Assembly: GCA_907165135.1 (NCBI GenBank)
Contig: OU015568.1
Span: forward strand, 4,030,001 to 4,094,000
Direction of reading: 5' to 3'
Length of the DNA: 64,000 nt
Origin: Oikopleura dioica
Taxonomy: Eukaryota; Animalia; Chordata
In this document: positions 17,403 to 18,647 of the stretch, piece by piece
Position numbering within the stretch: position 1 is the stretch's first letter
How the letters are laid out: the number at the start of each line of letters is the position of its first letter
The notes under the pieces: model-generated
Database searches by the model: none
Told to the model about the DNA's origin: nothing
The model's input: only the letters and a program-made list of their open reading frames with translations
Program-made: the position numbers and the translations under genes

Positions 17403-18647
17403 TTATGCAGTCAAGTCCTTGGCAGCAGCAAATTTGAGCAAGTCAACGACTCGTTGAGAGTAGCCCCACTCGTTATCGTACCAGATAACCACTAAAATGA
17501 GAGCTTGAAGTCATTTTCAAGAGCTTTTTCTTACATTTGTAAAAGGTAGAATTGAGCTCAATTCCAGCTGCAGCATCTACGGATGAGCTGAAAGGAGTTG
17601 TGTTGAAGTCAGAGCTGACCAAAGGCTCCTCGGTCACCTTAAACCTTGATGAGTCATTGTCGAAGAGGTTTGGCCTACCTGAATGACTTTGGCGAGGTCG
17701 CCTTGAGCAGCAGCCTTGATGCTGTCCATAATCTCCTGGTAGCTAGTTTCTTTTTGAACTTTGACAGTCAAATCAACAACGGAGACATTTGGAGTTGGAA
17801 CTCGGAATGCCATGCCGGTTATTTTACCCTTCAGCTCGGGAATGACCTTTGTGCAAGCTTTTGCAGCGCCGGTAGAGGCAGGAATGATGTTGACAGCGCC
17901 ACCTCTTGCATCTCGCCAGCTCTAGAAAAGAAGAGGAGAAAGGGAGAAACAGAGAAGGGTCCTACCTTTTTGCCCTTGGAAGAGCCATCGACAAGCATTT
18001 GACTGGCGGTATAAGAGTGGATAGTTGTCATGAGAGCTTCTTGAATTCCAAATTTGTCGTGGAGGATTTTGACGACGGGCGCAAGGCAGTTTGTGGTGCA
18101 GGAAGCGTTAGAGATGATCTTCATGTCTAGAAGGAGATGAAATAAAATTGTGAGATAATGAGAGTTTCTACCTGGTGAATATTGCTCATGATTGACGCCA
18201 TAGACAAACATAGGAGCATCTGGAGAGGGAGCCGTGATGATGACTTTTTTCGCGCCGTTGTCGATGTGAGGTTGACACTTGTCGAGATTATTGAAGATTC
18301 CGGTAGAATCGATGACGTAGTCGACTCCAACAGACTTCCAGTCGAGTTCATTTACGTCTCTAGAAATATCATTAAATTTATTGAAAAAATAATCGATTGA
18401 ATGGTTACCTGGTTGAGAAAATATGGACCTTGTTCCCATTTAGCATCAAATTCCCATCTTCAGCCGGAGTGGCGGTCCCTTTGAACGTTCCATGGGTCGA
18501 ATCATATTTCAACTTGTAGCACATGTATTCAATCGCGCCACAGTGATTGATCGCAACGAGCTCGACATTCTCCTCTTCAGCCAGAATTCTCGTCACGCAG
18601 CGGCCGATTCTTCCGAATCCGTTCAGTCCGACCTTGATTTTTGTCAT
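17403..18647 (-). CDS. GAPDH: Glyceraldehyde-3-phosphate dehydrogenase (multi-exon)
   Basis: [16 protein letters not shown], catalytic [35 protein letters not shown], and [16 protein letters not shown] before TAA at 17403. Short GT-AG introns. Confidence 0.97.

Follow-up and report, generated by a model that had tools for sequence, protein, structure and literature searches.

Gene structure and catalytic core

The 64-kb window, that is, the whole stretch of Oikopleura dioica DNA analysed, carries on its minus strand a GAPDH paralogue whose coding region runs from ATG to TAA over positions 17403–18647. Six minus-strand exons join into a 1023-nt coding sequence for an intact protein of 340 aa, which is 100% identical to the O. 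dioica entry CAG5080397.1 (P0243; Oidioi.mRNA.OKI2018_I69.PAR.g9573). The five introns measure 41–49 nt each and all have GT-AG borders. Splice model and translation leave the coordinates that the initial annotation had given for the gene, and for the two codons on which it focused, unchanged. A search of the 64-kb window by tblastn found no tandem GAPDH duplicate. An assembly or annotation artefact is ruled out, as two independent O. dioica assemblies, and many transcripts besides, agree on the altered pocket residues. Residue numbers (32–34, 77, 188 and others) follow B. stearothermophilus GAPDH; ‘own’ numbers are those of the 340-aa protein.

All exons and introns are given on the minus strand. 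Exon 1 (239 nt; 18409–18647), an interval covered by RNA reads, encodes the Gly-rich NGFGRIGR loop, strand β2 and the altered N-H-C-G loop. It is followed by intron 1 (49 nt; 18360–18408; GT-AG), a phase 2 intron that interrupts the codon of Arg77 (own Arg80); in reads from a diverged lineage the joint is placed at 18361>18418, with 7 letters unmatched. Exon 2 (188 nt; 18172–18359) is defined by the splice model and RNA read depth. Intron 2 (45 nt; 18127–18171; GT-AG) is in frame and without a stop; it is missing in the Norwegian orthologue (L004), which has a single 349-nt exon at this location. Exon 3 (161 nt; 17966–18126), visible in RNA read depth, encodes SCTTNC, His176 and the start of the S-loop, V-D-G-S-S-K-G-K-K. 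Intron 3 (44 nt; 17922–17965; GT-AG), the counterpart of a 161-nt intron in the Norwegian orthologue, is spanned by spliced reads joining 17921>17966 (31 for X4, 5 for X5). The greatest read depth is found over exon 4 (243 nt; 17679–17921), the source of WRDARGG, STGAAKA and AFRVP with Arg195, Thr208-Gly209 and Arg231. Intron 4 (41 nt; 17638–17678; GT-AG) has spliced reads with the cut offset by 2 (57 for X4, 16 for X5). Exon 5 (103 nt; 17535–17637) is given by the splice model and by reads, and intron 5 (43 nt; 17492–17534; GT-AG) by spliced reads joining 17491>17535 (81 for X4, 23 for X5 and 1 for the single-cell run X1). Exon 6 (89 nt including the TAA stop; 17403–17491) encodes WYDNEWGYS and the C-terminal helix. 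The hexamer AATAAA, read from the sequence alone, lies 125 nt past the stop (17273–17278, minus strand) and is a putative poly(A) signal. The 3′ UTR of the lineage from which the reads derive is too diverged for mapping, and loose read ends occur at 17407.

By family, motifs and predicted fold, the gene product is a type I phosphorylating GAPDH. The catalytic Cys149 (own Cys152; codon TGC, 18098–18100, minus strand) stands in a SCTTNC motif that is intact, as first reported, and the catalytic His176 (own His179) is encoded by CAC at 18017–18019 on the same strand. The residues of the anion and phosphate sites (Thr179, Arg195, Thr208-Gly209 and Arg231) are all retained. The motifs SCTTNC, TTIH, YTAS, WRDARG, STGAAKA and AFRVP are present in the protein and invariant in the appendicularian clade to which it belongs. 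Pfam domains PF00044 (Gp_dh_N) and PF02800 (Gp_dh_C) score 117.8 and 205.9 bits, and the TIGR01534 equivalog scores 421.2 bits against a cut-off of 367.2 bits. The AlphaFold2 monomer has a pLDDT of 92.6 and a pTM of 0.91, and Foldseek aligns it with solved GAPDHs at TM 0.95–0.96. The protein has no N-terminal targeting extension and begins three residues before strand β1.

Compared with canonical animal GAPDH (human, PDB 1U8F/1ZNQ; P0143/P0151), the paralogue has the same two-domain fold (TM 0.95–0.96, rmsd ∼1.4 Å), 55–59% identity, the same catalytic Cys and His, phosphate sites and length class, and likewise no targeting peptide. The differences are a His-Cys-Gly in place of Asp32-Pro33-Phe34 with a loop one residue shorter, Ser in place of Pro188, T-A-S-Q-M-L in place of T-A-T-Q-K-T, a Lys-Gly insert in the S-loop and the gain of three Cys.

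The cofactor pocket and the constraint upon it

The His-Cys-Gly at positions 32–34, canonically Asp-Pro-Phe, is encoded by CAC-TGT-GGC (18537–18545, minus strand). The two replacements proposed earlier are both borne out: the CAC at 18545–18543 is His in V-A-I-N-H-C-G (D32H), and the TCT at 17983–17981 (minus strand) is Ser188 (own Ser191) in V-D-G-S-S (P188S), a residue that is Pro in cytosolic GAPDH and Ser in NADPH-using GapA and GapC1. The positions are homologous, since this His aligns without gaps to the Asp of E. coli GapA and of vertebrate GAPDH, and this Ser to the Pro of VDGPS. The NAD-specific GapC signature, Asp32 with Pro188, is thus lost at both positions. The initial annotation also cites Bacillus (B. 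subtilis) GapB as an enzyme that lacks Asp32. Residue 32 is non-acidic but bulky; residue 33 is small and polar, but Cys in place of the Thr of GapA; Gly34 is as in GapA, and alignment places the one-residue shortening, relative to canonical animal GAPDH, in this same loop. Ser188 and Arg77 (own Ser191 and Arg80) are both present and invariant across the clade. In alignments, a two-residue Lys-Gly insert (codons AAG-GGC; 17972–17977, minus strand) follows Ser189; it is found in the O. dioica-side subclade and not in P0008, P0009 and P0010.

These residues are rare elsewhere. His32, Cys33 and Gly34 occur in 0 of ∼185 other GapC-type sequences, where the frequency of Ser188 is 0.5%. The pocket that surrounds the coenzyme's adenosine ribose is made up of two elements, the loop after β2 and the S-loop, and the changes of the clade are concentrated there: 8 of its 18 specific substitutions lie within these two loops (P = 2e-4). 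Cys is gained at three of the 18, one of them beside the ribose site; the gained cysteines are own Cys17, Cys36 and Cys219, with Cys43 in part of its members. Several pocket features (Ser188, Arg77, Gly34, Ser75, the shorter loop and the S-loop insert) repeat those of the NADPH-using plastid enzymes GapA and GapC1. Modelling of the pocket had been proposed as a check. In the AlphaFold2 model own His35 comes immediately after strand 28–34, the classical site of the NAD-specifying acidic residue; the S-loop (185–194) has a pLDDT <50 in the monomer, so that no geometric argument is possible. In known GAPDH tetramers the S-loop comes from the neighbouring subunit.

The protein is under very strong purifying selection. 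Okinawan and Norwegian orthologues differ by a dN of 0.026 and a dS of 1.25 (ω ∼0.02), and the pocket residues are kept throughout the clade wherever a sequence extends over them, with key codons varying synonymously only. RNA-seq of another O. dioica lineage, with reads mostly <90% identical to the Okinawan allele, shows that the orthologue is transcribed and spliced, and intronless full-length transcripts occur in at least six marine metatranscriptomes. Animal GAPDH is a moonlighting protein with many roles. Together with the broken NAD fingerprint, these roles could suggest that the paralogue is a GAPDH-like protein that has lost catalysis or moonlights, or else a duplicate in decay, in which the cofactor site would be irrelevant. 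This is highly improbable in view of the retention of all catalytic and anion-site residues, the ω of 0.02, the clade-wide invariance of the altered residues despite synonymous codon turnover, the expression and splicing of the gene and a TIGR01534 score above the equivalog cut-off. A pseudogene or decaying duplicate as such is ruled out by the same ω, the intact catalytic residues, the spliced expression and the synonymous-only codon variation.

The appendicularian clade and its origin

The Okinawa genome also codes for a canonical, vertebrate-like GAPDH of 333 aa with Asp32 and Pro188 (P0143; PAR.g11763), and the canonical GAPDH of the Norwegian assembly is P0151; both were reached via the spliced-leader-anchored transcripts L005–L007. 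This comparison among GAPDH copies upholds the original view of the gene as a paralogue, with a canonical Asp32/Pro188 copy in the same genome, and rules out the divergent gene as the sole GAPDH of that genome. At least eight different sequences from appendicularians (P0002–P0009) have the HCG/Ser188 form. Two of the transcripts start with part of the O. dioica spliced leader (27 nt in P0004, 21 nt in P0009; leader sequence from PMC6883708), and the O. dioica-type transcripts L010–L015 are without it. P0010 is the least-diverged, basal member of the clade; its sole contig (L009) is a hairpin chimera, so that its N-terminus with residue 32 stands outside the clade-wide residue counts, which cover the members whose sequence spans the positions concerned. 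Mean pairwise identity is 78% in the divergent clade and 88% among canonical appendicularian copies. Introns lie at positions 80/143/197/278/312 in the divergent gene and 14/71/112/283 in the canonical one; none is common to both, a mismatch that is uninformative because of intron turnover in O. dioica. A clade-profile search of 1.84 billion representatives returned no additional H-C-G proteins, which says little because the clade has probably merged into canonical clusters at 50% clustering. A search of the literature found no paper on this GAPDH paralogue.

The tree leaves the clade in a polytomy, where the GapC radiation begins. Its union with Metazoa has an AU p of 0.24 (0.29 with pocket columns masked), its union with the canonical appendicularian copies a p of 0.095, and its union with GapC1-like sequences a p of 0.26 (0.36 masked). 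Across quick, careful and pocket-masked trees and five AU tests, no placement is rejected at 0.05. The initial description of an ‘animal GAPDH’ is right for the carrier genome, which is that of an animal, but goes beyond the tree, which cannot put the clade inside metazoan GAPDHs.

Close parallels are found in GapC1, the chromalveolate plastid enzyme that includes apicomplexan apicoplast GAPDH. Like the paralogue, GapC1 is GapC-derived, has lost a strict Asp32 and gained Ser/Thr188, and has a one-residue-shorter 34–36 loop and Ser/Thr at 75–76; part of its members also have extra residues inserted behind position 188 (PMC3728087). It differs in its long N-terminal targeting sequences (GapC1-like representatives have 87–608 extra N-terminal residues) and at residue 32, which is Ser, Thr, Ala, Glu or Cys, with no His among the sequences compared; identity to the paralogue is 49–54%. 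For the evolutionary route proposed here, GapC1 is the best precedent.

This likeness can also be read as descent, with a chromalveolate plastid-type GapC1 gene acquired by an ancestral appendicularian and introns and some spliced leaders added later. The NADP-type features would then be inherited and not convergent; such an algal origin concerns ancestry and is compatible with the proposed use of NADP(H). It would fit the non-acidic residue 32, the shorter loop, Ser/Thr 75–76, T-A-S-Q and Ser/Thr188 common to both groups, the S-loop insert in the GapC1-like P0268, the presence of apicomplexan plastid-type proteins in the GapC1-like set and the AU values for union with that set. However, the AU tests likewise do not reject placement with Metazoa, and masking of the pocket moves the clade away from GapC1 in the quick tree. 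P0010 is nearer to canonical metazoan GAPDH (63–76% identity) than to GapC1-like proteins (54–60%), the divergent GAPDH is without an N-terminal targeting extension, and the S-loop insert is missing in basal clade members, which indicates that the insertion arose within the clade. Collectively, an algal origin is improbable.

Cofactor use and significance

Animal GAPDH is the textbook example of an NAD-specific glycolytic enzyme. To our knowledge, NADP(H)-using phosphorylating GAPDHs occur only in plastids, cyanobacteria, some other bacteria, archaea and one yeast lineage. The chloroplast and cyanobacterial enzymes GapA/Gap2 (spinach 2PKQ; Chlamydomonas 7ZQ3/7ZQ4) resemble the Oikopleura paralogue in Ser188, Arg77, Gly34 and Ser75. 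They differ in Ala187, the Arg183/Arg191 regulatory set, plastid targeting and CP12/thioredoxin regulation, as well as in keeping Asp32, and are ∼48% identical to the paralogue, which is GapC-type and not of cyanobacterial descent. Ser188 and Arg77 bind the 2′-phosphate and are convergent in GapA and GapC1, in which residues 32–35 and 74–77 are functionally divergent (PMC3728087); the same source confirms the Ser188 of GapA cited in the initial annotation. As the Asp32 retained by chloroplast GapA is rotated away (PMC3728087), loss of this residue is neither necessary for nor proof of NADP(H) use.

Engineered dual-cofactor GAPDHs change the same two sites as the paralogue and accept NADP+, in agreement with the initial annotation (E. 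coli GapA D34A/K with or without G188T-P189K; B. stearothermophilus and B. subtilis D32X-L187X-P188S; C. glutamicum D35G-L36T-T37K-P192S; PMC9145139). Catalysis by these engineered enzymes is badly impaired (kcat/Km drops from 5500 to ∼10 per mM per s), whereas the natural paralogue has long been under selection to compensate. Every replacement of D34 in E. coli GapA lifts the NAD+ Km from 0.028 to 3–5 mM and, D34N apart, confers NADP+ activity; D34N loses its NAD activity and gains none with NADP (PMC9145139). Thus, a polar non-acidic residue at position 32 does not guarantee NADP use. A D-to-H replacement at this site was not found among the published variants, and hydrogen bonds to the hydroxyls of the NAD ribose could persist with His32.

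Taken together, the pocket residues make it a well-founded hypothesis, with a probability close to one half (about 0.48), that cofactor use is relaxed or directed towards NADP(H). The paralogue would be an active tetrameric GAPDH from which discrimination against the 2′-phosphate of NADP(H) has been removed. An imidazole takes the place of the Asp32 carboxylate, the group that holds the hydroxyls of the NAD ribose and keeps a phosphate away; the change of Pro33-Phe34 to Cys-Gly and the shortened loop would open the pocket; Ser in place of Pro188 would supply the residue that hydrogen-bonds the 2′-phosphate in GapA, next to a retained Arg77; and in the O. dioica subclade the Lys-Gly insert would bring in a positive charge. 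The most likely outcome would be dual NAD(P) or NADP(H)-preferring activity. Glycolytic flux through the enzyme would then yield cytosolic NADPH, or the reverse reaction would consume it, while the canonical paralogue would carry NAD-linked glycolysis.

A second specialised isozyme beside a housekeeping copy has an animal precedent in the mammalian sperm enzyme GAPDHS, which is among the close structural matches of the paralogue. Unlike the paralogue, GAPDHS carries an N-terminal extension rich in Pro; it depends on NAD and is of vertebrate origin, separate from the clade. The Oikopleura enzyme may, by this precedent, be a glycolytic GAPDH that is restricted to a tissue, a stage or one sex and remains NAD-specific, its pocket changes tuning NAD(H) affinity, product release or regulation (e.g. 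redox control through Cys) and not admitting NADP(H). Read counts of 398, 99 and 3 in three comparable bulk RNA samples of similar sampling fit restricted expression, but these differences lie between coded samples, not named tissues. The three Cys gains described above, one of them next to the ribose site, and the inactivity of E. coli D34N with NADP also suit an NAD-linked enzyme. Against it, removal of Asp32 cost ∼100-fold in NAD+ affinity in every scaffold tested, so that a purely NAD-linked enzyme is expected to retain this residue, and the combination of its loss with Ser188, Arg77, Gly34 and Ser75 mirrors NADPH-using lineages. An NAD-specific isozyme is a strong rival reading, if the less likely of the two.

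On the proposal of NADP(H) use, it is tempting to suggest, tentatively, that appendicularians have the first known NADP(H)-using phosphorylating GAPDH of animals, derived from a cytosolic GapC via GapC1/GapA-like changes and acting as a cytosolic NADPH source or an NADPH-driven reverse step. Should the enzyme instead be NAD-only, Asp32 would be dispensable in a natural GAPDH, against the rule of thumb of the engineering literature. If NADP(H) use is true, nature would have run the experiment of switching the GAPDH cofactor a third independent time, in animals and beside a normal copy. Enzyme engineering could draw on it, since the 18 clade-specific sites display the compensating changes that arose naturally. 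Redox-balance models for an ecologically dominant group of zooplankton would change as well, and in these fast-growing tunicates glycolysis would supply cytosolic NADPH, or NADPH would drive the reverse step, alongside the canonical NAD-GAPDH.

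Gene model, constraint and expression

Reading of the sequence at 17200-18900 reveals a minus-strand GAPDH open reading frame with five very short introns. Splice joining and translation define six exons (18647-18409, 18359-18172, 18126-17966, 17921-17679, 17637-17535 and 17491-17403, in order), which join into a 1023-nt coding sequence for a protein of 340 residues; the introns measure 41-49 nt each, with GT-AG ends in all. This is the only GAPDH copy within the 64-kb window. The protein is identical to CAG5080397.1 (‘Oidioi.mRNA.OKI2018_I69.PAR.g9573’, Oikopleura dioica), carries the Pfam domains Gp_dh_N and Gp_dh_C, and scores 421 bits against the TIGR01534 equivalog (cut-off 367 bits). 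The gene is public under automatic names, and no paper discussing it was found in the literature searched. Spliced translation bears out the codons read in the initial annotation, namely CAC (18545-18543) for the His of V-A-I-N-H-C-G and TCT (17983-17981) for the first Ser of V-D-G-S-S, as well as its intact catalytic SCTTNC. His176 and the phosphate-site motifs YTAS, WRDARG, STGAAKA and AFRVP are also kept.

The Norwegian reference protein (CBY12928.1 / E4XT66, P0002) matches the window protein at 330 of 340 residues. On FN653149.1, its gene is flanked by an asparaginase-2 gene and an unnamed one encoding 207 aa, whose Okinawan counterpart is probably a minus-strand ORF (16935-17114) that opens with a signal-peptide-like stretch ~290 nt past the GAPDH stop codon. 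Intron presence and length vary at this locus among O. dioica lineages: intron 2 (18127-18171, 45 nt) is absent from the Norwegian orthologue (L004, 10281-10790), and intron 3 (17922-17965) measures 44 nt in the window versus 161 nt in Norway. The coding sequences (17403-18647 versus L004 10001-11313) are 84% identical and the proteins 97%, with dN 0.026, dS about 1.25 (saturated) and omega about 0.02, a ratio that indicates very strong purifying selection on the paralogue. Such a dS amounts to species-level divergence under the single name O. dioica.

Three bulk oligo-dT RNA runs (X4, X5 and X6) and one single-cell run (X1), labelled as the same species, were mapped on 16000-20500. Most mapped reads are <90% identical to the window gene and therefore stem from another O. 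dioica lineage. The reads are confined to GAPDH exons and span spliced joints at three predicted introns of the minus-strand gene: 17491>17535 (intron 5; 81 spliced reads in X4, 23 in X5), 17635>17677 (intron 4, cut shifted by 2; 57 and 16) and 17921>17966 (intron 3; 31 and 5). Total reads of the paralogue in the comparable bulk samples X4, X5 and X6, whose identities are coded, number 398, 99 and 3, which suggests that expression depends strongly on condition, stage or sex. At least six marine metatranscriptome samples contain complete intronless orthologue transcripts of O. dioica type.

A search of a metagenome collection for the spliced-leader end with ATG and the NGFGRIG motif behind it gave three matches, all encoding a canonical 333-aa GAPDH with A-I-N-D-P-F and V-D-G-P-S-G-K. 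The transcript used as query is 77-79% identical to vertebrate GAPDH and 85-86% identical to the canonical O. dioica enzymes P0143 (Okinawa, PAR.g11763) and P0151 (Norway). An Asp32/Pro188 GAPDH is thus encoded in the same genome, in line with the paralogue status claimed initially. Alignment with the genomic copies, as proposed then, gives 59% identity between the window protein and this sister; the two genes have no intron position in common.

The appendicularian clade and its origin

A first protein search yielded relatives P0003-P0010 with full-length identities of 66-80%, and H-C-G plus Ser188 occur in every one whose sequence spans these sites. Codons vary over six lineages (CAC/CAT for His, TGT/TGC for Cys, GGC/GGT/GGA for Gly, TCT/TCA for Ser188), with residues unchanged. 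P0004 and P0009 are encoded on contigs of about 1.3 kb that contain no introns and have, at their 5′ ends, the 3′-terminal 27 and 21 nt, respectively, of the O. dioica spliced leader (checked against PMC6883708), features that mark these contigs, by their sequence, as appendicularian mRNAs. The leader is found on mRNAs of two appendicularian species (L001, L003) and on none of the O. dioica-type transcripts L010-L015, two of which start 5′ of a candidate acceptor, TTCTCAG. Basal P0010 has a single contig (L009, 1-1402), a hairpin chimera in which the initial ~520 nt repeat part of its GAPDH coding sequence in reverse-complement orientation and the true N-terminus is missing.

In the tree, the clade is monophyletic (100/99), has a long stem and belongs to a basal polytomy of the GapC radiation; the canonical GAPDHs of appendicularians group within the chordates. 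AU tests give p 0.24 (all columns) and 0.29 (pocket columns masked) for grouping with the metazoan canonical clade, 0.095 (all columns) with the canonical appendicularian copies, and 0.26 (all columns) and 0.36 (pocket columns masked) with GapC1-like sequences, a set that takes in Cyclospora and Neospora plastid-type proteins. GapC1, a chromalveolate plastid enzyme descended from cytosolic GapC, has an insertion after 188 and a variable residue 32 (Glu, Ser, Thr, Ala) (PMC3728087). An old algal transfer, with which the GapC1 grouping would agree, is a very improbable origin of the clade. P0010, its least-diverged member, shares 63-76% identity with canonical metazoan GAPDH and 54-60% with GapC1-like proteins; a Lys-Gly insertion after Ser189 characterizes the O. 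dioica-side subclade, and basal members have no S-loop insert. Because of this closeness of P0010 to metazoan GAPDH and these insert-free basal members, putative descent from cytosolic GapC with convergent changes is favoured.

Five database records (P0095, P0061-P0063 and P0099, labelled E. coli 99.0670, Flavobacterium sp. or Salmo salar) carry a yeast-type S-loop motif and are probably contaminated; in the tree, P0095 (E. coli label) cannot be told apart from Candida GAPDH, and P0063 (Flavobacterium label) falls within the yeast clade.

The cofactor pocket

The initial annotation depended on His32 and Ser188 occupying homologous positions, and they do. In HMMER alignments, the His faces the Asp of the E. 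coli GapA N-D motif gap-free and also the Asp of vertebrate GAPDH, there with a gap of one residue two positions further on; the Ser faces the Pro of V-D-G-P-S. The AlphaFold2 model (mean pLDDT 92.6, pTM 0.91) matches solved GAPDHs (TM 0.95-0.96, rmsd about 1.4 Å) and places His35 (own numbering) directly after strand 28-34, at the classical NAD-specifying acidic site of the Rossmann fold. As the S-loop is poorly modelled in the monomer, no geometric argument on the pocket can be drawn from it.

Twelve clade members were compared with 90 canonical animal-type and 95 other GapC-type sequences for sites fixed in the clade, with a residue (nearly) absent elsewhere, and conserved in canonical enzymes. 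Eight of the 18 such sites lie in the β2 loop (own 35, 36, 37, 39) or S-loop (184, 187, 191, 204), which make up 27 of 239 eligible sites (hypergeometric P 2e-4). Relative to canonical animal GAPDH, the loop after β2 lacks one residue. Cys gains account for three of the 18 changes (own 17, 36, 219). Conserved cysteines gained in the clade are seen at own 17, 36 (codon 18540-18542), 43 and 219, one directly adjoining the ribose site, and may point to redox or metal regulation. Within the searches, His32 recurs only in an uncharacterised fungal GapC-type protein (Kwoniella sp. P0284, WVR04883.1), with Phe188; an uncharacterised GapC-type Clostridiaceae MAG protein (P0033) has Asn32 and Ser188.

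In GAPDH, Asp32 hydrogen-bonds the 2′-hydroxyl of NAD; in GapA this residue swings aside, admitting NADPH, and the 2′-phosphate is bound by Arg77 and by Ser188 of the R-axis-related subunit, a pair of convergent origin in GapA/Gap2 and GapC1 (PMC3728087). GapA has Asp32, Thr33, Gly34, Gly35, Ser75, Asp76, Arg77 and Ser188 (PMC3728087). The Oikopleura protein shares Gly34, Ser75, Arg77 and Ser188, but has His32, Cys33 and Thr76. E. coli GapA is of GapC type and shares about 54% identity with the window protein; in it, any Asp34 replacement raises the NAD+ Km from 0.028 mM to 3-5 mM; D34A, K, L and P confer NADP+ activity and D34N does not, His was not among the replacements tried, and G188T-P189K alone permits NADP+ use (PMC9145139). 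A specialised isozyme using NAD only, for which the D34N result leaves room and which the Km losses disfavour, is the main rival reading and a somewhat less probable one.

Collectively, the window gene encodes a second GAPDH that looks active, is under selection and is expressed, and in which the adenosine-ribose pocket is remodelled. The carboxylate that anchors NAD and excludes the 2′-phosphate would be lost, Pro-Phe to Cys-Gly plus the shorter loop would open the ribose pocket, Ser188 would offer a phosphate-binding hydroxyl, and Arg77, possibly a protonated His32 and an extra S-loop Lys could supply basic groups. Given these changes, dual or NADP(H)-preferring cofactor use is the single likeliest outcome (about 45-50%). 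The window GAPDH is a real and interesting candidate, with a cofactor use predicted from sequence.
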